Positions 9,467-63,869 of a DNA stretch of 64,000 bases are shown piece by piece. The notes beneath the pieces are model-generated. The model was not told the DNA's origin and did no database searches. It worked only from the letters and a program-made list of their open reading frames with translations. Numbering within the stretch: position 1 is the first letter of the stretch; each line of letters starts with the position of its first letter. The translations under genes and the position numbers were made by a program. Source of the DNA: Mizuhopecten yessoensis (lineage: Eukaryota). Where the stretch lies: positions 284,651-348,650 of the forward strand of contig NW_018404696.1 of the NCBI RefSeq assembly GCF_002113885.1, written 5' to 3'.

Positions 9467-9471
9467 AACAG

Positions 9472-9798: not shown

Positions 9799-10338
9799 GT
9801 GAGTATTGCAAAATACATAAATATAGTAAAATACTGGTGTGGTGAATTTCCCAACAAACTGTTTACTTTGTCCTGAACAAAATATTGTCACATTTTACTT
9901 ACATGTTAAGTCCTCTATAGAGTTCCTTGTAAACATGTTTTACTATAGAGATTTTAAATTTAAAACCAACTACAATTTATCTAAATTCGTGAAGATAGTC
10001 TGTCTGCAATACGGGAGTAGTAAATTGTATATTTTATTATTTTGTTGAAGTTAACAAACTATGAGTGGTAGTCCCAATGAACCAATAATCAAGTTGGCGT
10101 GCTTCCACTGTATAGTCTCTTACCTTATACACTTACACTTAGGTAGAATATTTTGATTACAAAATTATCAATTTCATAAGATTTTGAAATACAAATCTGG
10201 TAAAGCATGCATTTACATTCCTGGAGTGTGCTATTTTATACCAGTAGATCATGACCCCGTTATATAACATGACAACAAAAGTTTGAGCGTATAAAATTGT
10301 ACAAGATGAACAGTGTGTGATAATGTTTGTATTGCCAG

Positions 10339-15820: not shown

Positions 15821-16244
15821 ATCAAAGGATCTTTATGAGACCTATAAAAGACAATATTTAAATTCTTTGCTCTCCACCTCCTTACAGGTACTACCACCTA
15901 TGCTAGAAATCCAAAATGGGAGTCTTGTACATTAACTTCCACCTAGCAATGTTGTGGTATATGCCACCATGGTGTATAAGAATTGCAGAAATATATGCAA
16001 AATGCTTCAAATGTTTAATTCTGATATATAAGAGGTTCTCTCAAACAGATTAATTATCATTAGGGCCAGGGGTATTTTTAACAAAAGGAACATACATATT
16101 TAATTTGAGAAGGATCCCTCCAATACTTTCAGAGATAATAAACCCTACTATAAAAATCCAAGATGGATGTTGGTCAGCCTTTTTTCAGTCTCAAAAGTAA
16201 ACATTTGTATGCCTATTGATCTGCAGTTTTCATTGATAGTGATT

Positions 16245-18450
16245 GGTATACAGGCCATCAATAAGTACTATATTACACTGGTATGCAGGCCATCAAAAGG
16301 CACTGGTATACAAGCCATCAATTAGTACCATATTACACTGGTATACAGGCCATCAATTAGTATCATAATTATTACACTGGTATACAGGCCATCAATTAGT
16401 ACCATATTACACTGGTTTAAAGGCCATCAATTAGTACCATATTACACTGGTATACAGGCTATCAATTAGTATCATATTACACTGGTATACAGGCCATCAA
16501 TTAGTACCATATTCCACTGGTTTAAAGGCCATCAATTAGTACCATATTACACTGGTATACAGGCCATCAATCAGTATCATATCATACTGGTATACAGGCT
16601 ATCACTTAGTATCATATTACACTGGTATACAGGCCATCAATTAGTACCATATTACACTGGTATACAGGCCATCAATCAGTATCATATTACACTGGTATAC
16701 AGGCTATCACTTAGTACCATAATACACTGGTATACAGACCATCAATTAGTACCATATTACACTGGTATACAGGCTATCATTTAGTACCATAATACACTGG
16801 TATACAGACCAATTAGTACCATATTACACTGGTATACAGGCCATCAATTAGTACTGTATTTCACTAGTATATATGCCATCAATTAGTACCATATTGCACT
16901 GGTATACAGGTCATAAGTTAGTATCTTATTACATTGGTATACAGGTCATTAATTAATATATTATTACATTGGTATACAGGCCATCAATTAGTACCATATT
17001 ACATTGGTATACATGCCATCAATTAGTACCATTATACACTGGTATACTGGCCATCACTTAGTATCATATTACACTGGTATACAGGCCATCAATTAGTACC
17101 ATAATACACTGGTATACACACCATCAATTAGTACCATATTACACTGGTTTAAAGGCCATCAATTAGTATCCTATTATACTGGTATACAGGCTATCAATTA
17201 GTATCATATTACACTGGTATACAGGCCATCAATTAACATCATATCACACTGGTATACATGCCATCAATTAACATCATATCACACTGGTATACATGCCATC
17301 AAATAGTACTATATTACACTGGTATGCAGGCCATCAAAAGGCACTGGTATATACAGGCCATCAATTAGTACCATATTTCACAAGTATATAAGCCATCAAT
17401 AAGTATCATAATTCTTACACTGGTATACAGGCCAACAGTTAATACCATATTACACTGGTATACAGGCCAACAGTTAATACCATATTACACTGGTATACAT
17501 GTCATTAGTTAGTATTTTATTACATTGGTATACAGGTCATTAATTAGTATCTTATTACATTGGTATACAGGTTATCAATTAGTACCATATTACACTGGTA
17601 TAAAGGCAATCAATTAGTACCATATTTCACTAGAATACAGATCACCAATTAGTACCATATTACACTGGTATACAGGTCATCAAATTGTACCATATTACAC
17701 TGGTATATAGGCCAACAAATAATACCATATTACACTGGTATACAGGTCATCAATTAGTACCATATTACACTGGTGTACAGACCATCAAATAATACCATAT
17801 TGATTCTTCTGACTGACCATCAAATAATACCATATTACATTGGTATACAGGTCATCAAATTGTACCATATTACACTGGTATACAGGTCATCAATTAGTAC
17901 CATATTACACTGGTATACAGACCATCAAATAATACCATATTACACTGGTATACAGGCCATCAATTAGTTTCATATTTCACTGGTTTACAGACCATCAATT
18001 AATACCATATTACTTTGGTATAAAGGCCATCAATTAATACCATATTACACTGGTATAAAGGCCAACAGCTAGTACCATAATACACTGGTATACAGGCCAA
18101 CAGCTAGTCCCATATTACACTGGTTTAAAGGCAATCGATTAGTTCCATATTACACTGGTTTAAAGGCTTTTGATTAGTTCCATATTACACTGGTTTAAAG
18201 GCTATCAATAAGTACCATATTACGCTGGTATACAGGCCATCAAATAATACCAAATTACACAGGTATACAGGTAATCAATTAGTACCATATTACACAGGCA
18301 TACAGGCAATCAATTATAACCATATTACACTGGTATACAGGTCATCAATTAGTACCATATTACACTGGTTTTAAGGCCATTAATTAGTATCATATAACAC
18401 TGATATACAGGTCATCAGTTAGTGCCATCTACCAGTCAACAGGTCATCAA
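16245..18450. repeat. 35-bp minisatellite (ACTGGTATACAGGCCATCAATTAGTACCATATTAC)n
   Basis: About 60 diverged copies. Confidence 0.96.
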
Positions 18451-18575: not shown

Positions 18576-18737
18576 AATCGACTTGGTGATGTCATGCAGC
18601 GCTGGCAGGACTACAAGGATCTACTTGACAAAAATGACCATTACCTTAATGAAGAATTCCCTCGTTGGCTTGGAGACTGTGATGCTCAGGTGCCTGATAA
18701 CCTACAGGTTGCTCAGAACAAACTTGACAACATAAGG
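18576..18737 (+). CDS. SYNE1: Nesprin-like exon L (54 aa, NRLGDVMQRW...LDNIR)
   Basis: cacag|AAT and AGG|gtaagt; phase 0; FPRWL motif. Confidence 0.85.
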
Positions 18738-19301: not shown

Positions 19302-20702
19302 TTTAGCTCACCTTTCCTTAGGGCAAGTGACCTTAGGTCATGGTTTGGCATCTATTGTCCATCTGTCGACTTTTCACTTAAAAGACTACTAGTCTAGAAT
19401 GGCTGAATGGATTTTTACTAAATTTGGTTGGGAGCATAGTTAGGCTATGGGAGCTTAACATCGTAGAAATGAAAGGTGTGGCCCCTCTGGGGGGAGAGGG
19501 GCAGGGTCTATGAAGGGAAACATAGGTAAATCTTTAAACATTTCAACTGTTTGAGTATGGGTACAATCACATGGATCCAAACCTACACTGATTTAGATCA
19601 TAGCATCCTTGGCCAAAGGCGACTCGAAGTCCAAGGGGGGTCAACTTCTGAATAATAGAAATACCTAACATTGTGATACTTTGCCAGTAATTTGATGGCT
19701 TAGAGTGCTACTAAGTTTGCATATAGAAATAACCTGGACTCATATCGAAGGTCACAAGGGGTCAGATCTGTGAAAACACTTTACCATCTTCTAAATAACT
19801 CCCTCTGAATAATAGAAAGACTACGAGTGCTACAAAATTTGGAAAGAAGAATGACCTTGACATATATTCAAAGTCATAGGGGTCAAATTAGGGGGGGGGG
19901 GATTCTTCTGAAGAACGGAAAAACCCACAGTCATGACATTTGGTTAATAACTTGCTTGCATAAGTGCTACAAAATTTGCATAAAGAAATGACCTTGATGT
20001 ATATTTAAGGTCACAGGGTAAAATTTGTTAACTTCTGATGAAGAGTAGAAAGACCTGGAGTTGCGATATTTGTCCAGGAACTTGTATAGAGTAAAACATG
20101 AAATGACCATGACCCATTTTTATAGTCATAGGGGTCTAATTTGTTAAAATACTTTTTCTGAATACAGGAACAACATCCTCAGTTTCATGATATTTTATCA
20201 GTAACTTGCTGACAGGAAGTGCTACAAAGTTTGCAAAAACTATATTCATGGTCATGGGAGTCAAATTTAAACACAAAAAATTAAACAAATTATTCTGAAG
20301 AATGGAAAAACCTACAGCCATGATGTTTGGCCAGTATCTTTCTTTGTATGGAGTGCTACAAAGTGTGCAAAAAGAAATGACCTTGTCCAATATTCAAGAT
20401 CACAGGGGTGAAACTTATTTAAAACTAAATTATTTTTTCTGAAAAGCAGAAAGACCTTAAGTCATGATATTTGACCAGTAACTTGTTTGGAGTGTTTAAG
20501 GTTTGAGAATTGAAATAATCTGGACATATAGTTAAGGGCATAAAGGTCTGATTTGTCAAAAAACTTGAATGCCTTCTCCTGAGGAACCAAAAGGCTTAGG
20601 ACGATGATTATTTGCCAGTAACTTGTTGTTATGGAATGCTAAAAGTTTGTAATGAAAGGTAACATTGATCAGGGGAGGGTCTTCAGAACCAATGGGCCTT
20701 TT
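19302..20702 (+). mobile_element. Old HINE-like element with degenerate internal tandem repeats
   Basis: 5' ttttagctcacct...caagtgacc; recurring gtgctacaaa...atgaccttgac...ggtcacagggg units; hairpin-like 3' end ccaatgggcct. Confidence 0.55.
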
Positions 20703-22096: not shown

Positions 22097-22402
22097 GCTT
22101 TGAGAGAAGAGGTCCAAGGGCGAGGACCAGCCATTGATGCGTTCCTGAACCGGTACCGTGAACTGACCCAGCACAACCCTGCCCTTGTGGACCCAGTGAT
22201 GCGTGCAGTGCGTGAGGACTGGGAAGAACTTCTCGGGCAAATTGAAAATCTTCTAGAGGATAGGGAACAAGCTCTCCAGTGTAACCGCGACCTCCAGGAG
22301 CAGCAGACTGACATGGACCAGGATCTGGCCAATTTTGTGGACGAGCTTGAGAAGATAGAAGCTGCAGACGTAGCTGTCGTGGAAAAGTCTGCCCAGCTAA
22401 AG
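22097..22402 (+). CDS. SYNE1: Nesprin-like exon O (102 aa, ALREEVQGRG...SAQLK)
   Basis: tacag|GCT and AAG|gtatgt; phase 0; EDWEEL helix C. Confidence 0.87.
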
Positions 22403-25400: not shown

Positions 25401-25465
25401 CACTAATTCCTCCTTTGTTGATTATATAAGATATAATGTCATTCCTCCAATCATCTACCCTGCAG

Positions 25466-27190
25466 AGACGCAAGTGCCGTTCCACACAAACACCAGACCC
25501 ATCTGCCAGGTCATCTGGGCGACGCAGCAATCTCCTTGGATCACGCCACAGTGATGACGACGATGATGATGACGATGGTGATGACAGTGTGTTTAGATAT
25601 CCTCCCTCAGTACGTGGCGGCCGTGGCAGTACGCCCAGTAAACGTAAAATAAGGCGTGGTCTAGGGAGCCAGCCCCACACTCCCCATTCAGCACGTCGCT
25701 CACATAGCAGCAGACCTGATCATGATCTGAAGAAAGGTGGCGCTGCTGCAGGATGTGAGTCAGAGAGCGAAGAGTCTGGATATGGTGAGACGTACTATAC
25801 CATGCATGCTTCGAGTTTTGATACAGTCGACGTTTTTGGTTCTCAGACTTTAGATACAATGAGAGGTACACCCAGCCAGTTGTTGCTAGAAGCTGTGTCG
25901 GACGCCGAGTCCACTGGTAGTTATATAATCGGAGATTTTCCACAAATCAACCCAGATGATCTCCAGGATGCGGCATGTCAGACACCTGCCCATGCCCGCA
26001 CACAGACCCCCAGCAACATGTGGGGCGGTAGCTCGCGTAACATCAGTACACAAGTGCCACGCACCATGCAAACCCAAACTGAAAGTCTGCCACAGAACAC
26101 ATCAATGCAGACATCCAACCTGTCTCTTAACTCTGTCGGTAATCAAACCCGGAGGTCCCTTGGAGGCTCCAGGACAGACTTGTTAAAGAGTATACTAATG
26201 GACGTTAAAACCCTCAAGGCCCAGCGGGGTATTGGCTCAGACACCCCAACAGATGATGCACGGTCTGTAGCCTCTAATGGGAGCCTGCCGCGAGAAATGC
26301 TTCAATCTCTGAGCTCTGATGTACGGACACTAAAACATGCAGGCAGTCATGGAGTTGCTGCCACACAAACTCTCTCAGAGCAGGGAACGCAAACTGGAAT
26401 GAAAATATTTCCAGAAGGTGATCCCGTAAGGAACTCACGTCATGGACGTCTTCGTGATCTTATGTCTGATGTTAAAGACATGAAGGATGGGAATGACACT
26501 CGGTCGCAGCACAGTCTTGACATGCCATACGAGAGGAGCAGACCAATGTCAAGTGTAAGTGGGCTTCGTAACTCCCCCGTACGATTTGCCACTCCTGTTC
26601 CTCCACCTTCAAGACAAAATCGTGCTCTACCACCTCATCCTCCTCAAGAGAATGGGTTTGATAATTATGCACCCCCTGCAGGTTACTACCAGCCTATGCC
26701 AGTGCCAATGCCCAACCAGCCAATGGTAAATCTGAATTCCACAGCCCCAGCCACATTTGGACCGATGCCACACATGAACGGTCATCCTCCATACCCTACA
26801 GGAAGAGTCACCCAGGATGATCTTAATGCGATTAGTGACCGAGTTAATCGCTTACGTAACTACCAGATCCCTCCCCGTCGACAGTTACCTCCTCCTCCAC
26901 CCCCTCAGTATGTTGTGCCAGTGTTCTCAGCCCCACCAAGACGTCGTGTACGCATCCAAGAATTCCCCCAATCTTTCGATGACCAACAGGATGGATTTAT
27001 GTCCGACGAAAGTGAATATGATGGAGGTCGTGCTCCGAGGAGGAGGGGTCATGGGAGAGGTCATGGAGTACAGGATCGCTATGGACTAGATGGAGTACTC
27101 TCTGAGGCCAGTGAGGCCGCACGAGAACTCAAAATTCTTTCAAAGAAAATGAGAGATTCTCTTAGAGATGAACTCCTTAACGGTCCGTAA
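25466..27190 (+). CDS. Putative alternative terminal exon: 574-aa disordered Ser/Pro/Arg-rich tail with multiple TQT/QT motifs and a C-terminal amphipathic helix
   Basis: 1.75-kb non-repetitive ORF, GC-richer than its flanks; strong acceptor tcattcctccaatcatctaccctgcag|AGA in phase 0, matching the exon O donor; ends TAA at 27188-27190. Coding status is well supported; linkage to nesprin is inferred. Confidence 0.75.
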   Translation, partial: RRKCRSTQTPDPSARSSGRRSNLLGSRHSDDDDDDDDGDDSVFRYPPSVRGGRGSTPSKRKIRRGLGSQPHTPHSARRSHSSRPDHDLKKGGAAAGCESESEESGYGETYYTMHASSFDTVDVFGSQTLDTMRGTPSQLLLEAVSDAESTGSYIIGDFPQINPDDLQDAACQTPAHARTQTPSNMWGGSSRNISTQVPRTMQTQTESLPQNTSMQTSNLSLNSVGNQTRRSLGGSRTDLLKSILMDVKTLKAQRGIGSDTPTDDARSVASNGSLPREMLQSLSSDVRTLKHAGSHGVAATQTLSEQGTQTGMKIFPEGDPVRNSRHGRLRDLMSDVKDMKDGNDTRSQHSLDMPYERSRPMSSVSGLRNSPVRFATPVPPPSRQNRALPPHPPQENGFDNYAPPAGYYQPMPVPMPNQPMVNLNSTAPATFGPMPHMNGHPPYPTGRVTQDDLNAISDRVNRLRNYQIPPRRQLPPPPPPQYVVPVFSAPPRRRVRIQEFPQSFDDQQDGFMSDESEYDGGRAPRRRGHGRGHGVQDRYGLDGVLSEASEAARELKILSKKMRDSLRDELLNGP

Positions 27191-31133: not shown

Positions 31134-32667
31134 GTACAGGTCTAATGATGGACATTCATTGAACAGGTCTAATGATGGACATTTATTGAACAGGTCTAAT
31201 GATGAACATTCATTGAACAGGTCTAATGATGGACATTCATTGAACAGGTCTAATGATGGACATTTATTGAACAGGTCTAATGATGGACATTCATTAACAG
31301 GTCTAATGATGGACATTCATTAACAGGTCTAATGATGGACTTTCATTGAACAGGTCTAATGATGGACATTTATTGAACAGGTCTAATGATGGACATTTAT
31401 TGAACAGGTCTTATGATGGACATTTATTGAACAGGTCTAATGATGGACATTCATTGAACAGGTCTAATGATGGACATTTATTGAACAGGTCTAATGATGG
31501 ACATTCATTGAACAGGTCTAATGATGGACATTTATTGAACAGGTCTAATGATGGACATTCATTGAACAGGTCTAATGATGGACATTTATTGAACAGGTCT
31601 AATGATGGACATTCATTGAACAGGTCTAATGATGGACATTTATTGAACAGGTCTAATGATGGACATTCATTGAACAGGTCTAATGATGGACATTTATTGA
31701 ACAGGTCTAATGATGGACATTCATTAACAGGTCTAATGATGGACATTCATTAACAGGTCTAATGATGGACTTTCATTGAACAGGTCTAATGATGGACATT
31801 TATTGAACAGGTCTAATGATGGACATTCATTGAACAGGTCTAATGATGGACATTCATTGAACAGGTCTAATGATGGACATTCATTGAACAGGTCTAATGA
31901 TGGACATTCATTGAACAGGTCTAATGATGGACATTCATTGAACAGGTCTAATGATGGACTTTTATTGAACAGGTCTAATAATGGACATTTATTGAACAGG
32001 TCTTATGATGGACTTTCATTGAACAGGTCTAATGATGGACATTTATTGAACAGATCTTATGATGGACATTCATTGAACAGGTCTAATGATGGACATTCAT
32101 TGAACAGGTCTTATGATGGACATTTATTGGACAGGTCTAATGATGGACATTTATTGTACAGGTCTAATGATGGACATTTATTGAACAGGTCTAATGATGG
32201 ATATCATTGAACAGGTGTAATGATGGACATTCATTGAACAGGTCTAATGATAGACATTTATTAAACAGGTCTAATGATGGACATTCATTGAACAGGTCTA
32301 ATAATGGACATTTATTGAACAGGTCTAATGATGAACATTCATTGAACAGGTCTAATGATGGACATTTATTGAACAGGTCTAATGATGGATATCATTGAAC
32401 AGGTCTAATGATGGACATTCATTGAACAGGTCTAATGATAGACATTTATTGAACAGGTCTAATGATGGACATTCATTGAACAGGTCTAATAATGGACATT
32501 TATTGAACAGGTCTGATGATGGACATTCATTGAACAGGTCTAATGATGGACATTTATTGAACAGGTCTAATGATGGACATTCATTCATATCTTATACATT
32601 AAATCTCCCATTGAACAGGTCTGATGATGGACATTCATTGAACAGGTCTAATGATGGACATTTATTG
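31134..32667. repeat. 27-bp minisatellite (AACAGGTCTAATGATGGACATT(C/T)ATTG)n
   Basis: About 55 near-identical copies. Confidence 0.97.
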
Positions 32668-32984
32668 AGATTAAATTCTCAGGCTAGTTTTTTTTAATGT
32701 TTGCATGACATGAACCAACTTCAAAGTTAGTATGACAGAAAGTTATAGGAAGTTAATAGTCACCTGTATGAACATTTTTTTCGACGTGAACCTTTGAAAT
32801 TGTTTTTGGATTTCATTGCATCAAAGATTTTGTGAATTGATTCACAAAACAGTTTCTGCAAAGTACAAACTTTGTTATAAAATTAATAGATTAATACAAT
32901 GGAACCATATCATTATATTTGCTTTGTATAGTAAAAAAATGGCTACACGCTTCATATGTTTACACCTCTCAGTTTACATCAAAG

Positions 32985-34888
32985 TATCATATCTCACATC
33001 ATATCTTATGCATCAAATCTCACATCATATCTTATACATCAAATCTCACAGCATATCTTATGCATCAAATCTCACATCATATCTTATACATCAAATCTCA
33101 CAGCATATCTTATGCATCAAATCTCACAGCATAACTTATACATTAAATCTTACATTATATCTTATACATTAAATCTTACATCATATCTTATACATTAAAT
33201 CTCCCATTACAATTATATATCTCAGTTTACATCAATTAAAGTATATCTCACAGCATATCTTATGCATCAAATCTCACAGCATATCTTATGTATCAAATCT
33301 CACAGCATATCTTATGCATCAAATCTCACATCATATCTTATACATTAAATCTCCCATTACAATTATATATCTCAGTTTCCACCAATTAAAGTATATCTCA
33401 CAGCATATCTTATGCATCGAATATCACAGCATATATTATACATCAAGTCTCACAGCATATCTTATGCATCGAATATCACAGCATATCTTATACCTCAAAT
33501 CTCACAGCATAACTTATACATTAAATCTTACATCATATCTTATACAGTAAATCTCCCATTACAATTATATATCTCAGTTTACATCAATTAAAGTATATCT
33601 CACAGCATATCTTAAACATCAAATCTCACAGCGTATCTTATGCATCAAATATCACAGCATATCTTATACATCAAATCTCACAGCATATCTTATGCATCAA
33701 ATATCACAGCATATATTATACATCAAATCTCACAGCATATCTTATACATCAAATCTCACAGCATATCTGATACGTCAAATCTCACAGCATATCTTATACA
33801 TCAAATCTCACAGCATATCTTATACATCAAATCTCACAGCATATCTTATACATCAAATCTCACAGCATATCTTATACATCAAATCTCACAGCATATCTTA
33901 TACATCAAATCTCACAGCATATCTTATACATCAAATCTCACAGCATATCTTATACATCAAATCTCACAGCATATCTTATACATCAAATCTCACAGCATAT
34001 CTTATACATCAAATCTCACAGCATATCTTATACATCAAATCTCACAGCATATCTTATACATCAAATCTCACAGCATATCTTATACATCAAATCTCACAGC
34101 ATATCTTATACATCAAATCTCACAGCATATCTTATACATCAAATCTCACAGCATATCTTATACATCAAATCTCACAGCATATCTTATACATCAGATCTCA
34201 CAGCATATCTTATATACATCAGATCTCACAGCATATCTTATATACATCAGATCTCACAGCATATCTTATATACATCAGATCTCACAGTATATCTTATATA
34301 CATCAGATCTCACAGTATATCTGATATACATCAGATCTCACAGTATATCCTATACATCAGATCTCACAGCATATCTTATACATCAGATCTCACAGCATAT
34401 CTTATATACATCAGATCTCACAGCATATCTGATATACATCAGATCTCACAGTATATCTTCTATACATCAGATCTCACAGCATATCTTATACATCAGATCT
34501 CACAGCATATCTTATATACATCAGATCTCACAGCATATCTGATATACATCAGATCTCACAGTATATCTTATATACATCAGATCTCACAGCATATCTTATA
34601 CATCAGATCTCACAGCATATCTTATATACATCAGATCTCACAGCATATCTTATATACATCAGATCTCACAGCATATCTTATATACATCAGATCTCACAGC
34701 ATATCTGATATACATCAGATCTCACAGTATATCTTATATACATCAGATCTCACAGCATATCTTATACATCAGATCTCACAGCATATCTTATATACATCAG
34801 ATCTCACAGCATATCTTATATACATCAGATCTCACAGCATATCTTATATACATCAGATCTCACAGCATATCTGATATACATCAGATCT
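32985..34888. repeat. 26-bp minisatellite (CATCAAATCTCACAGCATATCTTATA)n grading into a 28-bp variant
   Basis: Unit changes to CATCAGATCTCACAGCATATCTTATATA after about 34190. Confidence 0.97.
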
Positions 34889-35282
34889 CCCGTTACAATC
34901 TCTCAGCTGCCTCAAGAATAACAGGGAAATCAAAGGTTGATTTGATATTGTTCCGTATTTGATCAAACTGATTTGGCAATATCAAATATGGTTTTCACAT
35001 AGAAAATGATAAAACGATGGATTTCACATAGAAAATAATAAAAATGTGTGTTAAAATGTTGCTGCAATTATTTATTTTCCATCACAACCATCCTATTTTT
35101 TAGTTTGCACACACTAACATTATCTAGGTCCAGCACGAATCTAATCTAACAAAATTCACATGTGTTTGTACAGTATCATGTATCAGGGTGTATACTTAGT
35201 GTGGAATTAACTACAAACAGTTGACATTGTTATTGAACAGAATATGTGATCACCCACTTTTTGAAAATGAAACTTTAAGCAA

Positions 35283-36525
35283 GGGTCTGTACAAGGCTAC
35301 TCTAGACCTGTTGCTGACGGGTACAATCTTCTGTCAGGTGACTGTACCAGATCAGGCTACTCTCGACCTGTTGCTGACAGGTACAATCTTCTGTCAGGTG
35401 ACTGTACCAGATCAGGCTACTCTAGACCTGTTGCTGACAGGTACAATCTTCTGTCAGAGTCTGTACAAGGCTACTCTAGACCTGTTGCTGACGGGTACAA
35501 TCTTCTGTCAGGTGACTGTACCAGATCAGGCTACTCTCGACCTGTTGCTGACAGGTACAATCTTCTGTCAGGTGACTGTACCAGATCAGGCTACTCTAGA
35601 CCTGTTGCTGACAGGTACAATCTTCTGTCAGAGTCTGTACAAGGCTACTCTAGACCTGTTGCTGACAGGTACAATCTTCTGTCAGAGTCTGTACCAGGCT
35701 ACTCTAGACCTGTTGCTGACAGGTACAATCTTCTGTCAGAGTCTGTACCAGGCTACTCTAGACCTGTTGCTGACAGGTACAATCTTCTGTCAGAGTCTGT
35801 ACCAGGCTACTCTAGACCTGTTGCTGACAGGTACAATCTTCTGTCAGAGTCTGTACCAGGCTACTCTAGACCTGTTGCTGACAGGTACAATCTTCTGTCA
35901 GAGTCTGTACCAGGCTACTCTAGACCTGTTGCTGACAGGTACAATCTTCTGTCAGAGTCTGTACCAGGCTACTCTAGACCTGTTGCTGACAGGTACAATC
36001 TTCTGTCAGAGTCTGTACCAGGCTACTCTAGACCTGTTGCTGACAGGTACAATCTTCTGTCAGAGTCTGTACCAGGCTACTCTAGACCTGTTGCTGACAG
36101 GTACAATCTTCTGTCAGAGTCTGTACCAGGCTACTCTAGACCTGTTGCTGACAGGTACAATCTTCTGTCAGGGTCTGTACCAGGCTACTCTAGACCTGTT
36201 GCTGACAGGTACAATCTTCTGTCAGGGGTCTGTACCAGGATACTCTAGACCTATGTTGCTGACAGGTACAATCTTCTGTCAGGGGTCTGTACCAGGCTAC
36301 TCTAGACCTGTTGCTGACAGGTACAATCTCCTGTCAGTGGTCTGTACCAGGCTAATCTAGACCTGTTGATGACAGGTACAATCTTCTGTCAGGGGTCTGT
36401 ACCAGGCTAATCTAGACCTGTTGCTGACAGGTACAATCTTCTGTCCGGGATCTGTACCAGATCAGGCTACTCTAAACGGGTTGCTGACAGGTACAGTCTC
36501 CTGTCAGGGGTCTGTACCAGATCGG
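35283..36525. repeat. 54-bp (with 60-bp variants) minisatellite containing a CTGACAG...CTGTCAG inverted repeat
   Basis: (CTGTACCAGGCTACTCTAGACCTGTTGCTGACAGGTACAATCTTCTGTCAGAGT)n. Confidence 0.97.
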
Positions 36526-38364: not shown

Positions 38365-39200
38365 TATGTATAAATATATATATATATAGATACAGAATAT
38401 ATATATATAGATAGAGAATGTATAATAAATGTATATATATAATAAATGTATAGAATATATATATATATATTTACAGAATATATAATGAATGTACATATAG
38501 ATACAGAATATAGTCCGCCTGAAGAAGCCCTAGAACTTAGAAGGCAGAAAGGCCTAAGAGGCGATCTGAAAAAATTATGTTTTTATTCTATATTTTCCTT
38601 CGCAAGGACTTAATTATNNNNNNNNNNNNNNNNNNNNNNNNNNNNNNNNNNNNNNNNNNNNNNNNNNNNNNNNNNNNNNNNNNNNNNNNNNNNNNNNNNN
38701 NNNNNNNNNNNNNNNNNNNNNNNNNNNNNNNNNNNNNNNNNNNNNNNNNNNNNNNNNNNNNNNNNNNNNNTATAGATACAGAATATATAATAAATGTACA
38801 TATAGGCACAGAATATATAATAAATGTATGTTTAGGTACAGAATATATATAAAATATATATTAAGGTACAAAATATATAAATAATGTATATTTAGGTACA
38901 GAATACATAAAAATTGTATATTTAAGTATGAAATATATAATAAAAGTATGTTTAGATACAAAATAAATAATAATTGTATATTTAGGTACGGAATATATTT
39001 AAAATTTATACTAAGGTATATAATATATAATAAACGTATAATAAGGTACAGAATATATAATATATGTATATTTAGGTACAGAATATATATTATATGTATA
39101 TTTAGGTACAGAATATATATTATATGTATATTTAGGAACAAAATATATAATAAATGTATATTTAGGAACAGAAGATGTAGGTAAATATTGTGTATAGGTA
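38365..39200. repeat. AT-rich minisatellite of about 30 bp (TATTTAGGTACAGAATATATAATAAATGTA)n spanning an assembly gap
   Basis: Degenerate copies on both sides of the N run. Confidence 0.8.
38618..38770. other. Assembly gap (153 N)
   Basis: Run of n characters. Confidence 0.99.
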
Positions 39201-42337: not shown

Positions 42338-43432
42338 TGCAGAAGGTGTGATACACAGATGGTGTGATACACAGAAGGTTTAATACACAGGTGTGATACA
42401 CAGATGATGTGATACAGAGATGGTGTGATACACAGATGATGTGATACACAGATGGTATGATACACAGAAGGTGTGATACACAGATTGTGTGATACACAGA
42501 AGGTGTGATACACAGATTGTGTGATACACAGATGATGTGATACACAGATGGTGTGATACGCACAAGGTGTGATACACAGATGGTGTGATAAACAGATAGT
42601 GTGATACACAGAAGGTGTGATACACCATCTGTGTATCACACCTTCTGTGATACACAGATGGTGTGATAAACAGATAGTGTGATACACAGAAGGTGTGATA
42701 CACATATGGTGTGATAAACAGATGGTGTGATAAACAGAAGGTGTGATACACAGAAGGTGTGATACACAGATTGTGTGATACACAGAAGGTGTGATACACC
42801 ATCTGTGTATCACACCTTCTGTGATACACAGATGGTGTGATAAACAGATAGTGTGATACACAGAAGGTGTGATACACAGAAGGTGTGATACACCATCTGT
42901 GTATCACACCTTCTGTGATACACAGATGGTGTGATAAACAGATGGTGTGATACACCTTCTGTGTATCACACCATCTGTTTATCACACCATCTGTGTATCA
43001 CAGAAGGTGTGATACACAGATGGTGTGATACACAGATGATGTGATACACAGAAGGTGTGATACACAGATGGTGTGATAAACAGATGGTGTGATACACAGA
43101 AGGTGTGATACACAGATGGTGTGATTCACAGAAGGTGTAATACACATGTGTGATACACAGATGGAGTGATACACAGAAGGTGGGATACACAGATGGTGTG
43201 AGACACAGATGGTGTGATACCCAGAAGGTGTGATACACAGATTGTGTGATACACAGATGATGGGATACAAAGATGGTGTGATACACAGTAGGTGTGATAC
43301 ACAGATTGTGTGATACACAGATGGGGTGATACACAGAAGGTGTAATACACATGTGTGATACACAGATGGCGTGATACACAGAAGGTGTGATACACAGATG
43401 GTGTGATACACAGAAGGTGTGATACACAGATT
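42338..43432. repeat. 16-bp minisatellite (GTGTGATACACAGA(T/A)G)n with internal inverted monomers
   Basis: Direct reading; inverted blocks near 42621, 42796, 42889 and 42951-43000. Confidence 0.96.
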
Positions 43433-43919: not shown

Positions 43920-45015
43920 AAGCTGAGTGGTTTTATGGTGAGCACATGTAGGGATCTTGTAATTAGCTACGTGGTTATATGTTGGGCACAGAGGGGTTAG
44001 GTAATGAGCAAAGTGGTTTAATATTGAGCACATAGGGGTTTTGTTATGAACAAAGCTGTTTAGTGTTGAGCACATAAGGGTTTTGTAATGAGCTAAGATG
44101 TTTTATGTTGAGCACAGAGAGGTTTTGTAATGAGCTAAGTGGTTTAATGTTGAGTACAGAGGGGTTTTGTAATGAGCTAAGTGGTTTAATGATGAGCACA
44201 GAGGGGTTTGGTAATGAGCTAAGAGGTTAACTGTTGAGCACAGATGGGTTTTTTAATGAGCAAAGTGGTTTAATATTGAGCACATAGGGGTTTTGTTATG
44301 AACAAAGCTGTTTAGTGTTGAGCACATAAGGGTTTTGTAATGAGCTAAGTGGTTTAATGTTGAGCACAGAGGGGTTTGGTAATGAGCTAAGTGGTTTAAT
44401 GTTGAGCACAGATGGGTTTTGTAATGAGTTAAGTGGTTAAATGTTGAGCACAGATGGGTTTTGTAATGAGCAAAGTGGTTTAATATTGAGCACATAGGGT
44501 TTTGTTATGAACAAAGCTGTTTAGTGTTGAGCACATAAGGGTTTTGTAATGAGCTAAGATGTTTTATGTTGAGCACAGAGGGGTTTGGTAATGAGCTAAG
44601 TGGTTTAATGTTGAGCACAGAGGTGTTTTGGTAATGAGCTAAGTGGTTTAATGTTGAGCACAGAGGGATTTGGTAATGAGCTAAGAGGTTAACTGTTGAG
44701 CACATAAGGGTTTTGTAATGAGCTAAGAGGATAACTGTTGAGCACATAAGGGTTTTGTAATGAGCTAAGTGGTTTTTTGTCGAGCCCAAAAGAGATTGGT
44801 AATGAGCTAAGGGGTTTAATGTTGAGCGCAGAGGTGTTTTGGTAATGAGCTATGTGGTTTAATGTTGAGCACAGGGGTTTGGTAATGAGCTAAGTGGTTT
44901 AATGTTGAGCACAGACGGGTTTGGTAATGAGCTAAGTGGTTTTTTGTCGAGCCCAAAAGAGTTTGGTAATGAGCTAAGTGTTTTTTTGTCGAGCACAGAA
45001 GAGTTTTGTAATGAG
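43920..45015. repeat. 42-bp minisatellite (GTAATGAGCTAAGTGGTTTAATGTTGAGCACAGAGGGGTTTG)n
   Basis: About 26 copies. Confidence 0.95.
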
Positions 45016-45470: not shown

Positions 45471-45704
45471 AGGATTCTGGTGAGAGAGAACAATGGTTCA
45501 TTAAATAGATAGGTATACAATCACTGTTGTTAATATTCCTACTAAATCAATTGTTTGACCTCACAATAACCTTTGTTGGAGTTTTTCCAGTAAAGTGCCA
45601 TTACTTCCCTTTATGGGTTTCATAATTACCATACAGATCAATTGAGGGTAATGAAGTCTTCAAGGCCTTATAGAGCTGTTTCATGTATTGATAAAGAGAG
45701 GGCA

Positions 45705-46922
45705 AAGGCACATTAGAGCAGGCTAGGTCTGGCATAGTACAGTAGAGCAAGCTAGCCCAGACAAAGTACAGTAGAGCAAGCTAGGTCTGGCAAAGTACAG
45801 TAGAGCAAGCTAGGTCTGGCAAAGTACAGTAGAGCAGGCTAGGTCTGGCAAAGTACAGTAGAGCAAGCTAGCCCAGACAAAGTATAGTAGAGCAGGCTAG
45901 GTCTGGCAAAGTACAGTAGAGCAGGCTAGGCCAGGCAAAGTACAGTAGAGCAAGCTAGGTCTGCCAAAGTACAGTAGAGCAGGCTAGGTCCGGCAAAGTA
46001 CAGTAGATCAAGCTAGGTCGGGCAAAGTACAGTAGAGCAGGCTAGGGCTGGCATAGTATAGCATAGCAGGCTAGGTCTGGCAAAGTACATTAGAGAAAGC
46101 TAGCCCAGACAAAGTATAGTAGAGCATGCTAGGTCTGGTAAAGTACAGTAGAGCAGGCTAGGTCTGGTAAAGTACAGTAGAGCAGGCTAGGTCCGGCAAA
46201 GTACAGTAGATCAAGCTAGGTCGGGCAAAGTACAGTAGAGCAGGCTAGCCCAGGCAAAGTACAGTAGAGCAGGCTAGGCCAGGCAAAGTACAGTAGAGCA
46301 AGCTAGGCCAGACAAAGTACAGTAGAGCAGGCTAGGGCTGGCATAGTATAGCATAGCAGGCTAGGTCTGTCAAAGTACAGTAGAGCAGGCTAGGTATGGC
46401 ATAGTATAGCATAGCAGGCTAGGTCTGGCAAAGTACATTAGAGAAAGCTAGCCCAGACAAAGTATAGTAGAGCATGCTAGGTCTGGCATAGTATAGCAGA
46501 GCAGGCTAGGTCTGGCAAAGGACAGTAGAGCAGGCTAGGTCAGGCAAAGTACAGTAGAGCAGGCTAGGTATGGCATAGTATAGCATAGCAGGCTAGGTCT
46601 GGCAAAGTACATTAGAGAAAGCTAGCCCAGACAAAGTATAGTAGAGCATGCTAGGTCTGGTAAAGTACAGTAGAGCAGGCTAGGTCAGGGAAAGTACAGT
46701 AGAGCAAGCTAGCCCAGACAAAGTACAGTAGAGCAGGCTAGGGCTGGCATAGTATAGCATAGCAGGCTAGGTCTGTCAAAGTACAGTAGAGCAGGCTAGG
46801 TCCGGCAAAGTACAGTAGAGCAGGCTAGGGCTGGCAAAGGACAGTAGAGCAGGCTAGGTCTGGCATAGGATAGCATAGCAGGCTAGGTCTGGCAAAGTAC
46901 AGTAGAGCAAGCTAGGTCAGGC
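45705..46922. repeat. 29-bp minisatellite (GCAGGCTAGGTCTGGCAAAGTACAGTAGA)n
   Basis: About 42 copies. Confidence 0.96.
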
Positions 46923-47264: not shown

Positions 47265-48240
47265 TGGCCTCTAGGTCCGGCCTGTCCTTGGTCAGACCTG
47301 CCGTTGGTCCACCCTGTCCTTGGTCAGACCTGTCCTTTGTCCGACCTGTCCTTGGTCAGACCTGTCCTTGGTCGAGCCTGTCCTTAGTCCGACCTGCCCT
47401 TGGTCAGACCTGCCCTTGGTCCAGCCTGTTTTTGGTCAGACCTGCCCTTGGTTCAGCCTTTTCTTGGTCCGACCTGCCCTTGGTCCAGCCTGTCCTTGGT
47501 CAGACCTGCCCTTGGTCTGGCCTGTCATTGGCCTGGCCTGTCCTTTGTCAGACCTGTCTTTGGTCAGACCTGCCTTTGGAAAGACCTGCCCTTGGTCCGT
47601 CCTGTCCTTGGTCCAGCCTGTCCTTGGTCAGACCTACCCTTAGTCAGACCTCCCCTTGGTCAGACCTACCCTTGGTCCGGCCTGCCCTTGGCCAGACCCG
47701 CCCTTGGTCTGGCCTGTCCTTGGTCAGACCTTCCCTTGGTTCAGCCTGGCCTTGGTCAGACCTGTCCTTAGTCAAGCCTTTTTTTGGTCCGACATGTCCT
47801 TGGTCAGAACTGCCCTTGGTCTGGCCTGTCGTTGGTCTGGCCTGCCGTTGGTCTGGCCTGTCGTTGGTCTGGCCTGTCCTTTGTCAGACCTGTCCTTGGT
47901 CAGACCTGCCCTTGGAAAGACCTGCCCTTGGTCCGGCCTGTCCTTGGTCTGGCCTGTCCTTGGTCAGACCTACCCTTGGTCAGACCTGTCCTTGGTCAGA
48001 CCTACCCTTGGTCCGGCCTGCCCTGGATCAGACCTCCCCTTGGTCAGACCTCCCCTTGGTCAGACCTCCCCTTGGTTCAGCCTGCCCTTGGTCTGGCCTG
48101 TCCTTAATGCTAAATCAGACCTGCCCTTGGTCTGGCCTGTCCTTGGTCTAGCCTGTCCTTAATGCTAAATCAGACCTGCCCTTGGTCCGGCCTGTCCTTG
48201 GTCTGGCCTGTCCTTAATGCTAAATCAGACCTGCCCTTTG
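47265..48240. repeat. 16-bp GC-rich minisatellite (CCTG(T/C)CCTTGGTCAGA)n
   Basis: About 60 copies; accounts for ORFs 47199-48377. Confidence 0.96.
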
Positions 48241-50484: not shown

Positions 50485-50767
50485 TGTTCTAAAGCATTCC
50501 TGGGCTAAGTGGAATCAAGGGAGGATGTGCCCCCCCCCCCCCCCCCCCCCCAGGAGCAGAGGGGCAGGGCCCAATAGGGGAAAGTTAGGTAGATGTTTAA
50601 AACCCAACCCCCTCCATGGGGGCAGAAAGAAGAGACCCAATGATGGGTGTGGCTGAGAGACAGGGCCAATATTTTGAAACGGTTGCAGTATTATTTGTAA
50701 TGAAAATATTTTGACGATTTTGCTTAATTATCCAGGCTAACTATACAAGCCCTTTGGGCCTGTTGTT
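50485..50767 (+). mobile_element. HINE-like 3' remnant
   Basis: ggggcagggcccaatagggg motif related to the 19.5-kb element; ends caagccctttgggcctgttgtt. Confidence 0.4.
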
Positions 50768-51350
50768 TGTTCTTTTATCTTGATCATGTAAGAGTTGTAT
50801 ACTTACTGCAAAGACCAGGTAGGTGAATAGTTAACGAGAATACTTACCTGGATCCCTGAATTACCGTTATATATGTACAGCAGAGGTAGTTCTATAAATA
50901 CAAAACAAGGTTTCATTGGATTGTGTATTGGGACCATAACATTGGGTAGATCAGCATACAAATACACCTATTGTATTAGGTATACTCAACATCAGTGGAC
51001 TTTTATACTATATACTATGGAGGGGTGTGCAGGTTTGAGCTTGTGTACATTTGAGATCTCTGGTCCATAACCAGATTTATATATTCACCTAATGGATTTT
51101 CTGCTGTCAGGACCTGCCACACCCTGTACAAGGAATGGAATGATCGGACAGTTACACGGGTCATAGTTCTAACTATAGGTGGAGTTGTGGGAGAGAGTAT
51201 GGTCATTTAAATCAGACGGACAGGTATACTTTCTCATGAGCATGCATTACACACTTTCGGAAATGTGATTTTTTTCGACCTTTTGGATTATTATTTGGTG
51301 ACATAGTAGTGTTGATTTTGTTGGGTGTTATGACCCATGTGTAATGTATA

Positions 51351-51437
51351 ATGGGAAACACAGTAACTCACTGTGGAGGGAAAAGGTCCAAGAAAAGGAA
51401 GAAGAAAGATACTAAACAGAACAACAATGAGAAAAAG
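51351..51437 (+). CDS. Putative alternative first coding exon, MGNTVTHCGGKRSKKRKKKDTKQNNNEKK (myristoylation/palmitoylation/polybasic signal)
   Basis: Kozak ataATGG; 29 codons; AAG|gtaaat phase-0 donor compatible with the acceptor at 63615; M-G-x-x-x-T consensus, Cys8, KRSKKRKKK. Confidence 0.62.
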
Positions 51438-51512
51438 GTAAATTTTAATTATCTGTTATTGTTACTCAAGTTTTTCTTCATCCTCACACAATTAATATCC
51501 TCCATCAGTATT

Positions 51513-51625
51513 GCTGACTGTGGACATTGATACTTTCAGTACGGCTGCTGACTGTGGACATTGATACTTTCAGTACGGCTGCTGACTGTGGACATTGATA
51601 TTTTCAGTACGGCTGCTGACTATGT
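51513..51625. repeat. 34-bp tandem repeat, about 3.3 copies
   Basis: gctgactgtggacattgatactttcagtacggct. Confidence 0.9.
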
Positions 51626-56735: not shown

Positions 56736-57670
56736 CAGAATGATTTCAGTGTCCTAGAGGTCTATAGAATGATTTCAGTGTACTAGAGTTCGATAGGATG
56801 ATTTCAGTGTCCTAGAGGTCTATAGGATGATTTCAGTGCCCTAGAGGTCTATAGAATGATTTCAGTGCCCTAGAGGTCTATAAAATGATTTCAGTGTCCT
56901 AAAGGTCTATAGAATGATTTCAGTGCCCTAGAGGTCTATAGAATGATTTCAGTGTCCTAGAGGTCTATAGGATGATTTCAGTGTCCTAGAGGTCTATAGA
57001 ATGATTTCAGTGCCCTAGAGGTCTATAGAATGATTTCAGTGCCCTAGAGGTCTATAGAATGATTTCAGTGTCCTAGAGGTCTATAGAATGATTTCAGTGT
57101 CCTAGAGGTCTATAGAATGATTTCAGTGCCCTAGAGGTCTATAGAATGATTTCAGTGCCCTAGAGGTCTATAGAATGATTTCAGTGTCCTAGAGGTCTAT
57201 AGAATGATTTCAGTGTCCTAGAGGTCTATAGAATGATTTCAGTGCCCTAGAGGTCTATAGAATGATTTCAGTGCCGTAGAGGTTTATAGAATGATTTCAG
57301 TGTCCTAGAGGTCTATAGGATGATTTCAGTGTCCTAGAGGTTATATAGAATGATTTCAGTGCCCTAGAAGTCTAGAGAATGATTTCAGTGCCCTAGAGGT
57401 CTAGAGAATGATTGCAGTGTCCTAGGGGTCTAGAGAATGATTTCAGTGCCCTAGAGGTCTATAGAATGATTTCAGTGTCCTAGAGGTCTATAGAATGATT
57501 TCAGTGCCCTAGAGGTCTAGAGAATGATTTCAGTGCCCTAGAGGTCTAGAGAATGATTTCAGTGCCCTAGAGGTCTAGAGAATGATTTCAGTGTCCTAGA
57601 GGTCTATAGAATAATTTCAGTGCCCTAGGGGTCTAGAGAATTATTTCAGTGCCCTAGAGGTCTAGAGAAT
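56736..57670. repeat. 29-bp minisatellite (AGAATGATTTCAGTG(T/C)CCTAGAGGTCTAT)n
   Basis: About 32 copies. Confidence 0.97.
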
Positions 57671-60134
57671 GTTTTTTTCCCTTTTCTATTAAACACTGCA
57701 ATCGGTGTACATATGAACAATGTAAGAACAGTTTAACTTTATGAAGTTTTGCCTTTTGGTTTGAAAAACATTTTTCTAAATTGTGAAACGTTAATTGCAA
57801 CAAGGTCATCAAGAAGTAACGAAGGTCAGTGGCATAGGACTTAAAATGTCTGAAAGCAGAGGAGATTGATCTTTTACAATTTCAACAAGCTATAAAGTAC
57901 TGATGGAAATACTCAGCCGTAATTTAACGTCTGTTGAGCTATTTTGATTCGGTTAGTTTAAATCAACTTCAGTTATGAGTAAATAATCCAAAACTATGAT
58001 AACAAAGGAAATCAAATATTTAAGGAAATATGAGGAATGTGGTTAAGTTTTACCGGTGGAGTATATAGACAGGGATAAGGGGCAGTGAGATTATCACAGG
58101 AGATTTACACACGTCTCACTGGTTCTACTCTTAAAAACAGGTTTATCAATGGGAAGTATTCACCTCGTATCGGGGAAAAACAATATCCTAAGTACAAGTA
58201 AATCTTTCATATCTAATTGTTCCTTAAATCCAACCTGATAGCTACTAATATACACAAGGAGCTTATTAATCAGAGACGGGTGTTGGCATTAATCCAGCAT
58301 TATTGTACAGTTTTCTGTGGTGCTGGTTGATAGAGACAGTCTGGTCAGCTTGGAATAGTTGTAATAGAAATAGGTACCTAGGTTTGAAACTGTTAAAGGA
58401 ATTATACATGAGGATTCAAAATATCCCTGAGGCAGCAGCATAGAAAATGTTCCTATTTTCTTTAAGATTGAAAACAAAACAAAAACTTCTTGGTGGTTGA
58501 GACACCATGTTCAGTATTGAAGGTGAAGCAATTTGATTCCAGTTAAACGTACTGGTAGACAGACTGGTAAGACGCCATAACAATATATCTATACACTATT
58601 GTGTTATATGTTCTTAGACTGTAATATAGTTTATACAAGAAAACAAATCTCACGGAAAATGTATTTGACTAAGCAAAATAAATGTAAAATGTCTATCACA
58701 ACAGTGTCATTGAAATCCTGTGGTGGTGTTGTCCTTATGGTGTCACTTTCTCTATTACAGCAGTGTTGTGAACATTCTATCTTGTGTGGAAATGTCACTT
58801 TAAGATTAAATTTTCATTTACTTCATAAACAAACCCTGAGTATGGAGACATCATGTCCATTTGTTTATCCTTTTGCTGACCGCCCAAATGTGTGAAGTTT
58901 AAATATACATTTTACGTAACTGACCTCCATCAGTGTTCAGGCCAATTTTTCTGGTCAAGCTTTAATTTATACCTATAGTTTTTATTGACTGACCACATTC
59001 CGTAGTATTTGAGTGAATTCCCTGGCCCCTATACTACACACTGATATAGGTAAGCCTCTGTATTGTACCCACTGTGGCTCTGAAGACTAAGCACTTCTCC
59101 TTATGCGATTATTTCTTATATTTGAATTTAAACAAACAAATCCATTGTGGTCAGATTGAAAAGAAAAAATATGAAATGAATACTTCACTGAGCTGGTTTT
59201 TCAGTCCTATCCTTAGAGATCAGCAGTTACCAGTACTCTGTGTATACAGTGCAGTGGTGATTTCACCAAACTTTGTCAAGTTAGGTGAGGATTGAAGATG
59301 GGCATGATATATAGATATTACTAAGTTAGAGACATTTTTTATGTTCCTCAAAGCACGGAACATCAATGCCACAAGTTAACCTGGTCGGAAGCTGTAAGTG
59401 TAGTGTACCATGTAAATTCTACTACTGACACCACCAACGACAAATCAGAAACATCCCCTTGAGCAGGTTTCCCCCCTCAGCCTTCATGTAAGGTTGATCA
59501 AATGTAAGTCCTATGGCCATGGGATCTACCTCTTACGATGACTGGCTCCGAGTAATCTGATCTTCTCAGTTCTATAGGAAACTGTTTTAAGCTAAAAATG
59601 TTTGCATCATTATTTATATTTGATAAATCATTGAAATAGTAAGTACATGTTGTTGGATTAGTTCAACTGAATCATAAATGTTATTCTTATACATATTGAT
59701 GTAGAGGAATTTAACGCGAGCCGTATAATTAAATAATGTACTGCTGCTTCGCTAAAGTCGACTAATATATGTATGTAGAATGTTGAAGAAATGTGCATCA
59801 GGGTTTCAATAAAGATAGTGAATTCATGTATAAAATTGTATCCGGAGGCATGCTACCCAGGTATTGGTGTAACTTGTCTGAGTGGGTGGATATTGATTGC
59901 AGTAGATGTACCTGTAATGTATCATTAATTAAAATGTAATACTTATCTGAGAACTCCATCGGTGAACAGCTAATAGACTGAAAGGATCATAGCAGCCAGG
60001 AACTAACATGCTGTGTATTAATTAAGTCGCACTAAGGAGGTTTGACATATCAATATCTTATTGATTATGCAGGAAAAAAATCTATAGTTTCTTAAAATTT
60101 GTGATGCAACATTCTTACAACAAAATACAGGTAC

Positions 60135-61203
60135 ACAATGTTTTCTCAACAGGGGAATCAAACCATAAATTTTCTACAGGGACATCAAACCATATATTAT
60201 CTACAGGGACATCAAACCATATATTATCTACAAGGGAATAAAACAATGTTTTCTCAACAGGGGAATCGAACAATGTATTATCTACAGGGACATTAACAAT
60301 GTATTCTCTACAGGGACATCAAACAATGTATTATCTACCGGGACATCAAACAATGTATTATCAACAGGGACATCAAACAATGTATTGTCTACAGGGACAT
60401 CAAACAATGTACTATCTACAGGGACATCAAACAATGTATTTACTACAGGGAAAGCAAACAATGTATTTTCTACAGGGGCATCAAACAATGTATTCTCTAC
60501 AGGGACTTCAAACATTGTATTATTGACAGGGACATCAAACAATGTATTTACTACAGGGAAAGCAAACAATGTATTTTCTACAGGGACATCAATCAATGTA
60601 TTTTCTACAGGGAAATCAAACAATGTATTTTCTACAGAGAAATCAAACAATGTATTTTCTACAGAGAAATCAAACAATGTATTTTCTACAGGGGCATCAA
60701 ACAATGTATTCTCTACAGGAACATCAAACAATGTATTATCCACAGGGACATCAAACAATGTATTCTCTACGGGGACATTAAACAATGTATTCTCTACGGG
60801 GACATTAAACAATGTATTCTCTACAGGGAAATTAAACAATGTATTCTCTACAGGAACATCAAACAATGTATTATCCACAGGGACATCAAACAATGTATTT
60901 TCTACAGAGAAATCAAACAATGTATTTTCTACACGGAAATCAACCAATGTATTCTCTACAGGGACATCAAACAATTTATTCTCTACAGGGACATCAAACA
61001 ATTTATTCTCTACAGGGACATCAAACAATTTATTCTCTACAGGGACATCAAACAATGTATTCTCTACAGGGACATCAATCAATGTATTTTCTACAGGGAA
61101 ATCAAACAATGTATTATCTACAGGGAAATCAAACAATGTATTTTCTACAGGGACATCAATCAATGTATTATCTACAGGGACATTAAACAATGTATTCTCT
61201 ACA
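60135..61203. repeat. 27-bp minisatellite (CTACAGGGACATCAAACAATGTATTCT)n
   Basis: About 39 copies; accounts for ORFs 60282-61394. Confidence 0.96.
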
Positions 61204-61402
61204 GATAAACTTATGTTATATATCACAGATAAACTTATGTGATATATCACAGATGAACTTATGTGATATATCACAGATAAACTTATGTTATATATCACAG
61301 ATAAACTTATGTGATATATCACAGATAAACTTAAGTTATATATCACAGATAAACTTATGTTATATATCACAGATAAACTTATGTTATATATCACAGATAA
61401 AC
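61200..61402. repeat. 24-bp minisatellite (TCACAGATAAACTTATGTTATATA)n fused to the preceding array
   Basis: About 8 copies; the junction shares ACAG. Confidence 0.94.
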
Positions 61403-63520: not shown

Positions 63521-63614
63521 CCAAGTCCTCTGACAATAAGCAATACTAAAAGATTATGTAGAAAATTGTCTCATTCATAATTGTTATTACATTACATGTG
63601 TTTTATTTTTTTAG

Positions 63615-63733
63615 AACCTGTCTGATCAACTTGACCTCCGGCGTGATGCTGTGGATGGACTGCGGACAAAATCGGGTGATACACTCAAACGTGTCAGCCA
63701 AGCCGACCGTGAACTGGTGGAGGGACAAATCAA
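63615..63733 (+). CDS. SYNE1: Nesprin-like exon Q (NLSDQLDLRRDAVDGLRTKSGDTLKRVSQADRELVEGQI...), resuming the spectrin repeat after a 41.2-kb intron
   Basis: Strong acceptor ttttattttttttag|AAC, phase 0; helix B-C sequence that completes the repeat left open at exon O; probable donor AA|gttagt (phase 2). Not in the + strand ORF track. Confidence 0.78.
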
Positions 63734-63869
63734 GTTAGTTTTACCTACTGCTGAAATGATGTAAACTGTACAAATGAATACAGTGGAACATTGTTTATCA
63801 GAACTCCAATGAGCTGACAAACACTTCAAAAATATAGAATACTGGATTGCTGAAATCAGAGCTGATACA

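Follow-up and report, generated by a model that had tools for sequence, protein, structure and literature searches.

Background

Nesprins are thought to reach membranes via their C-terminal KASH and the cytoskeleton via their N-termini. The membrane anchors of Src and MARCKS consist of a myristate plus a nearby basic cluster. To our knowledge, spectraplakin isoform 3 is the sole giant spectrin-repeat cytolinker with a documented lipid-anchored N-terminus, and for one human nesprin-1 variant such an anchor has been predicted. In the spectraplakin BPAG1a3, an alternative first exon encodes a conserved N-myristoylation motif (PMC3352950). The nesprin-1 prediction was obtained with ELM, which marked the N-terminus of human p931KASH-Nesp1 as potentially N-myristoylated (Rajgor et al., 2012; PMC3388047).

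Here we analyze a stretch of 64,000 nucleotides from Mizuhopecten yessoensis (contig NW_018404696.1, positions 284,651 to 348,650 of the forward strand), which is referred to as the window in the following. A preliminary description had proposed that it holds a hidden micro first exon encoding a Src/MARCKS-style membrane anchor in frame with a spectrin rod, so that an N-lipidated nesprin isoform would arise.

The nesprin gene in the window

As judged from similarity, the plus strand of the window carries a molluscan nesprin (SYNE1-like) gene. Its spectrin repeats are of the nesprin type, with SYNE1 and nesprin-1-like proteins as the closest named relatives, and the Pfam model Spectrin_SYNE1 matches four upstream exons (1634-9873), of which 9487-9873 alone passes the curated cutoff, at E 1.2e-10. 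The following features of this gene are relevant here:

18576-18737, plus strand: spectrin exon NRLGDVMQRWQDYKDLL..., whose Mytilus and Pinctada orthologues are preceded by an MG-basic exon 0.6-0.8 kb upstream
22100-22402, plus strand: upstream constitutive spectrin exon, ending ...VVEKSAQLK/GTATGT in phase 0; normal partner of the exon at 63615 in the long isoform
25466-27190, plus strand: disordered alternative terminal exon encoding about 574 aa, with acceptor ctgcag/AGA in phase 0, ending ...RDELLNGP and a stop
63598-63614, plus strand: polypyrimidine tract with acceptor, tgttttatttttttag, in front of the exon at 63615
63615-63734, plus strand: constitutive nesprin spectrin-rod exon NLSDQLDLRRDAVDGLRTKSGDTLKRVSQADRELVEGQIK, starting in phase 0

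The last of these exons is preceded by a T-rich tract and TAG directly before 63615 and continues with NLSDQLDLRRDAVDG..., which is open in phase 0. The nesprin-1-like protein X5 from Babylonia areolata (P0046, 4904 aa) skips the terminal exon and reads ...GVQMQK followed by FVDEVDQKRQGVEELRNKASELLPSLSQHDTQLVQEHMR. The spliced model was searched one exon at a time. Aligned locally against all 4904 aa, the 63615 exon matched best to Babylonia residues 1753-1789, directly past the orthologue of the 22402 junction, with a score of 68 versus 39 for the next best and none of 2000 shuffles reaching 68. This junction-exact alignment identifies 63615 as the constitutive exon that follows donor 22402, and the spectrin rod that had been placed there is thus a real nesprin exon. 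It follows that the candidate first exon sits in the 41.2-kb intron between 22402 and 63615, 3' of the alternative terminal exon. The single match of the 63615 exon, P0001 (40-aa query against 1.84 billion representative proteins), was rejected as spurious, because this is a tandem-repeat protein aligned in 12 weak stretches. Up to its end at 64000, the window shows a single exon downstream of the candidate, the one at 63615. No GT is present directly after 63734 (...GQIK, AAG/TTAGTT); possible donors of this exon are CTG/GTGGAG after 63716, TTA/GTTTTA after 63737 and GAT/GTAAAC after 63760 (phase 2).

The 584-aa open reading frame at 25436-27187 yielded SYNE1/nesprin-1-like matches at 33-52% identity in the protein collection and none closer; they come from Mytilus, Pinctada, Sinanodonta, Magallana, Dreissena and gastropods. 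All matched proteins stop at the same point (...DSLRDELL..stop), which makes this reading frame a conserved terminal exon and led us to reject it as an internal one. In Mytilus, Pinctada, Sinanodonta and Magallana as well as in gastropods, the C-terminus occupies a conserved position, and long isoforms skip the terminal exon. That the gene continues downstream is evident from M. californianus, whose terminal-exon locus is spanned on either side by a RefSeq gene with a product of 10,854 aa. In RefSeq, part of the terminal exon is listed in three Mytilus species as a separate 'uncharacterized protein' of 428-429 aa nested in the giant gene. A heterodont assembly (ERZ25073285) features a mariner-type transposase (DDE_3, Transposase_1, HTH_48; L003:1172-2221, minus strand) about 8 kb 5' of the terminal exon.

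The 41-kb intron is packed with minisatellites with periods of 16-61 nt (window 27000-64000), for example at 31136-32668, 32986-34889, 35285-36520, 42340-43431 and 43921-45015 and further at 45701-46922, 47281-48215, 56737-57675 and 60135-61402, and these account for the long spurious reading frames in the ORF list. Ambiguous bases in the window comprise a single N at 12307 and a run of 153 N at 38618-38770.

A candidate first exon at 51351-51437

The proposed exon and its immediate surroundings comprise three features:

51330-51350, plus strand: cluster of three upstream ATGs (51330, 51337 and 51344) with an in-frame TAA at 51342-44
51351-51437, plus strand: candidate alternative first coding exon, peptide MGNTVTHCGGKRSKKRKKKDTKQNNNEKK, 29 codons, ending in phase 0
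51438-51443, plus strand: donor GTAAAT (AAG/GTAAAT with the last exon bases), GT at 51438-39

What had been read from the sequence in the preliminary description proved accurate. The start codon at 51351-51353 (ATG GGA, 51351-51356) lies in a good context, an A occupying position -3 (51348) and a G position +4, and opens a frame of 29 residues that ends in AAG/GTAAAT. This donor agrees with MAG/GTRAGT at eight of the nine positions; for comparison, confirmed donors of the same gene read AAG/GTATGT at 22402 and AGG/GTAAGT at 18737. The claimed compatibility with 63615 holds as well, both the end of the candidate and the start of the 63615 exon being in phase 0. To call the exon hidden was fair. 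The genomic reading frame from ATG 51351 to its stop encodes 59 aa and the default minimum of the ORF list is 60 aa.

The TAA at 51342-44 is in frame two codons 5' of ATG 51351, and the candidate frame is therefore not enterable from upstream. With a stop just 5' and no usable acceptor, the candidate can only be a first exon; an internal cassette exon was rejected for these two reasons and for the missing pyrimidine tract. The combination that was found, i.e. a consensus donor, phase 0 into phase 0 and a frame closed on the 5' side, is the one expected for an alternative first exon. The candidate consists of unique sequence without repeat copies in the window, and an origin from a repeat or transposon was rejected, as only a 57-nt fragment (50545-50601) recurs within the window. 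This fragment is shared between 50530-50601 and 19482-19538 (75% identity over 57 nt), adjoins a poly-C run of about 23 nt, lies about 0.8 kb 5' of the candidate and probably derives from an interspersed repeat. On the other side, a 34-nt unit is repeated 3.2 times with 98% identity at 51512-51621, 75 nt 3' of the candidate donor.

The predicted peptide agrees with the N-myristoyltransferase consensus that had been ascribed to it: Gly2, Asn3, Thr6 and His7 satisfy the rule G-{EDRKHPFYW}-x(2)-[STAGCN]-{P} (a PROSITE PS00008-type pattern), with an uncharged, non-aromatic residue at position 3 (N3), an allowed residue at position 6 (T6) and a residue other than proline at position 7 (H7). The polybasic cluster is also present. 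Residues K11-K19 read KRSKKRKKK, equivalent to eight K/R in nine residues with Ser13 inside, and the 29-mer altogether contains 11 K/R and 2 D/E. A cysteine had been suggested as an additional membrane-targeting signal, and this suggestion stands in part: Cys8 exists and is the sole cysteine of the head, but Cys3 or Cys5/6 next to Gly2 are lacking. As canonical dual acylation uses Cys3, or Cys5/6, palmitoylation of Cys8 would be possible but non-canonical, and we regard this residue as a weak candidate.

At this point, it has to be considered whether the candidate might be the first exon of an independent small gene within the nesprin intron rather than of a nesprin isoform. Nested genes are common in large introns and RefSeq, as outlined above, annotates the terminal exon nearby as a gene of its own in Mytilus. 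Against this, neither strand between 49.2 and 63.6 kb contains another coding-like reading frame with a Pfam match, the reading frames in this region look non-coding or are minisatellites, and the phase of the candidate suits the next nesprin exon. We therefore consider a nested gene very improbable indeed.

Upstream ATGs and the use of the start codon

Six upstream ATGs are situated within 115 nt of ATG 51351 (51236, 51242, 51263, 51330, 51337 and 51344). Three of them fall within 21 nt, such that ATG 51351 is one of four ATGs at 7-nt spacing in AT-rich sequence. The ATG at 51344 has G at -3 and starts an out-of-frame reading frame of 23 codons which ends at 51415, overlaps the start at 51351 and would divert scanning ribosomes from it. 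The upstream ATGs argue for an attenuated use of ATG 51351. Upstream of the candidate, a convincing core promoter was not identified, the only TATA-like element being TTTAAAT at 51205-51211; a scan for bacterial promoters and terminators is irrelevant, as the DNA is eukaryotic.

These observations touch on a second way of reading the exon, namely as a transcribed first exon without a lipid anchor. Translation would then start mainly at the upstream ATGs or further downstream, or the head would stay unmyristoylated and KRSKKRKKK would serve as a classical nuclear localization or inner-nuclear-membrane signal. The overlapping, out-of-frame ATG at 51344 and its neighbors at 51330 and 51337 speak for this reading. 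So does the basic run, which fits the monopartite nuclear localization core K-K/R-x-K/R and for which the preliminary description had already named this alternative; as a pattern in the sequence, the alternative is sound. In addition, short vertebrate nesprin isoforms have been reported at the inner nuclear membrane. However, the context of ATG 51351 (A at -3, G at +4) is the best among the four ATGs, upstream ATGs also precede the comparable exon in Mytilus (see below), and Gly2, Asn3 and Thr6 constitute an unforced match to the N-myristoyltransferase consensus that is common to the Mytilus and Pinctada heads. We judge a first exon without a lipid anchor to be quite improbable; should myristoylation fail, a nuclear localization role of the basic run would be the main functional rival.

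Comparable exons in other bivalves

Two gene models, CAC5390745.1 from M. coruscus (878 aa) and CAG2199470.1 from M. edulis (863 aa), open with MGNKSSTRKQRSS... (MGNKSS...). Exons of this type are:

L001:47330-47443, L002:2194-2307 and L005:57792-57869: MG-basic candidate first exons of Mytilus and Pinctada, 0.6-0.8 kb upstream of the orthologue of the exon at 18576; the first is the Mytilus exon described next

The Mytilus head, MGNKSSTRKQRSSTKL..., is encoded by a basic 38-aa exon that ends in AAG/GTAAGA and is joined in phase 0 to the spectrin exon NRLQDVLQKWQ..., the orthologue of window exon 18576. In M. californianus, the reading frame of this exon is intact. Three synonymous and no non-synonymous differences occur in codons 1-16, while codons 17-38 show no synonymous and four non-synonymous differences, and the 100 nt 5' of the exon are 98% identical. 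The Mytilus exon also has upstream ATGs, each of them closed after one or two codons. In Pinctada imbricata, MGSMKSKTGVSKNLSKSSKLKLERKK... is found 590 nt 5' of the 18576-orthologous exon and is followed by weak donors; by its relative place, MGSMKSKTGVSKNLSK... is likely the counterpart of the Mytilus exon. The Pinctada head reads MGSMKSKTGVSK... Exons of this type would endow Mytilus and Pinctada with a myristoylated, KASH-less short nesprin. The MG-basic exon is absent from the Sinanodonta locus, and no counterpart of the Mytilus exon was found 5' of exon 18576 in the window, where a 35-nt satellite (63 copies, 16244-18428) fills its place.

The Mytilus models resemble the candidate in several respects: they stem from the same gene and feature a basic MG first exon that ends in phase 0 and is followed by a partner starting with N. 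The Mytilus exon, however, resides about 0.8 kb upstream of the 18576 orthologue and gives an 878-aa product that closes with the KASH-less terminal exon, whereas the candidate is located one intron further downstream, past the terminal exon. Homology between the two was detected neither by tblastn nor by blastn or MAFFT. Given the different intron and the lack of detectable homology, the candidate would head another isoform, one that contains the downstream rod, and not the KASH-less 878-aa form. By analogy, the Mytilus exon raises the prior for MG-basic first exons in bivalve nesprins, short of proving the exon at 51351.

Searches for closer relatives of the candidate did not yield any. With the 59-aa reading frame as the query of a word index, no protein of 32-103 aa among 5.8 billion shared three 5-residue words, and a scan of metagenomes with a degenerate DNA pattern for MGNTVTHCGG gave no match. 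In Mytilus, Pinctada, Sinanodonta and the heterodont, the 10-19 kb that follow the terminal exon contain no MG exon and end short of the 63615 orthologue. Likewise, annotated assemblies lack a called gene in the 10-kb flank 3' of the terminal exon, and a further 9 kb 3' in the ENA assembly ERZ25073285 hold nothing.

Rarity of the configuration

The most serious objection is that a purine-rich intronic patch may start with ATGGGA and end with AAG/GT by accident and would never be used as an exon. The candidate tract is 77% purine and 52% A. Such a composition favors K/R codons, keeps stops few and creates AAG/GT, and the features of the candidate are thus non-independent. The start is one of four ATGs at 7-nt spacing in AT-rich DNA, homologues are missing from the protein word-index, representative and metagenome searches, homology to the Mytilus exon is lacking, and the candidate was picked out of many windows for being striking.

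We therefore looked at how often such a configuration arises. On both strands of the window, 8 of 2851 ATGs fit the myristoylation consensus, and solely that at 51351 has an open frame up to a phase-0 AG/GTRA donor. Across all six frames, stretches with at least eight K/R in nine residues are found at two loci, namely the candidate and a poly-A tract at 24868. As an empirical null, we scanned both strands of the window and of six further nesprin loci (770 kb) for consensus ATGs followed by at least 15 codons with at least six K/R and by any GTR donor in any phase. Five ATGs qualified. Four of them, one each from M. coruscus, M. californianus, Pinctada and the window, are in the sense orientation of nesprin, and the fifth is an antisense chance case in Sinanodonta with poor donors, an example of what accident can produce. 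A rough estimate by hand calculation puts the chance expectation for the 41-kb intron at about one in a thousand.

These counts speak against an accidental reading frame, as the joint configuration appears about once per several hundred kb even when weak donors and any phase are allowed, and an AG/GTRA donor in the phase required by the next exon is unique to the candidate within the window. Moreover, the candidate occupies the sense strand of the nesprin gene, and in mussels the orthologue has the same type of exon. Taken together, we regard a chance origin as somewhat unlikely.

The proposed isoform

Considering all of the above, we lean towards regarding 51351-51437 as a genuine alternative first exon that encodes a myristoyl-polybasic anchor. 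As a whole, the reading put forward in the preliminary description is partly supported: the sequence facts, the motif, the phase, the nesprin exon and the rarity bear it out, and the rest, i.e. transcription, splicing, use of the start codon, lipidation and localization of the isoform, we infer from them.

An internal promoter in the 41-kb intron (22402 to 63615) would drive the candidate exon and the donor after 51437 would be joined to 63615 in phase 0. The product would carry a unique head of 29 residues on a shorter nesprin composed of the downstream spectrin rod and the C-terminus encoded past the window. Upon removal of Met1, N-myristoyltransferase would acylate Gly2 co-translationally (consensus G2-N3-x-x-T6-H7), and electrostatic binding of K11-K19 to acidic phospholipids would reinforce the weak myristate anchor as in Src and MARCKS. 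Ser13 within the basic cluster is a plausible phospho-switch and Cys8 may serve as a non-canonical palmitoylation site. If this is true, the lipid-anchored N-terminus would provide a direct membrane attachment at the end of the rod opposite KASH.

It is a tentative extension, and one that we place clearly on the unlikely side, that the 51351 isoform also keeps KASH. It would then comprise a rod of about 3000 residues with KASH in the outer nuclear membrane and the myristoyl-polybasic head at the other end, where this switchable head would sit in an acidic membrane such as the plasma membrane. In this case, the isoform would represent a direct, regulatable tether between membrane and nucleus. 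Together with the MG exons of Mytilus and Pinctada, such an isoform would mean that pteriomorph bivalves have repeatedly given nesprin isoforms lipid anchors. More generally, short first exons below the cut-offs for open reading frames can hold the entire targeting information of an isoform.

Comparison with known systems

A lipid-anchored nesprin would not establish a new category; it would extend the known myristoylation motifs on alternative first exons, as in BPAG1a3, to the nesprins. Spectraplakin isoform 3 (BPAG1a3/dystonin-a3 and MACF1 isoform 3) is similar in that, through one of several alternative first exons, a giant spectrin-repeat cytolinker gene provides a short unique head with a myristoylation motif. 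It differs by belonging to the plakin/GAR-domain family and not to the KASH nesprins, and it does not share sequence homology with the candidate. Furthermore, the spectraplakin motif is conserved across vertebrates.

The comparison with Src and MARCKS made in the preliminary description is apt as a resemblance in design and does not extend to homology. As in Src-family proteins and MARCKS, Gly2 and Ser/Thr6 are followed within about 20 residues by a basic cluster with a phosphorylatable Ser, and the Pinctada head MGSMKSK... comes close to the Src-type consensus. In contrast, a spectrin rod would make up the remainder of the candidate protein, in place of a kinase or actin-crosslinking effector domain, and dually acylated Src-family kinases have Cys at position 3 while the candidate has it at position 8.

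Among the nesprins themselves, short isoforms from internal promoters, such as nesprin-1-alpha and the variants of Rajgor et al., are alike in that the genes use many internal starts, which provide C-terminal portions of the rod with N-terminal peptides of their own. The site in p931KASH-Nesp1 is a predicted one without a described polybasic partner, and the molluscan exon, which combines both elements, is unrelated to it in sequence and position.
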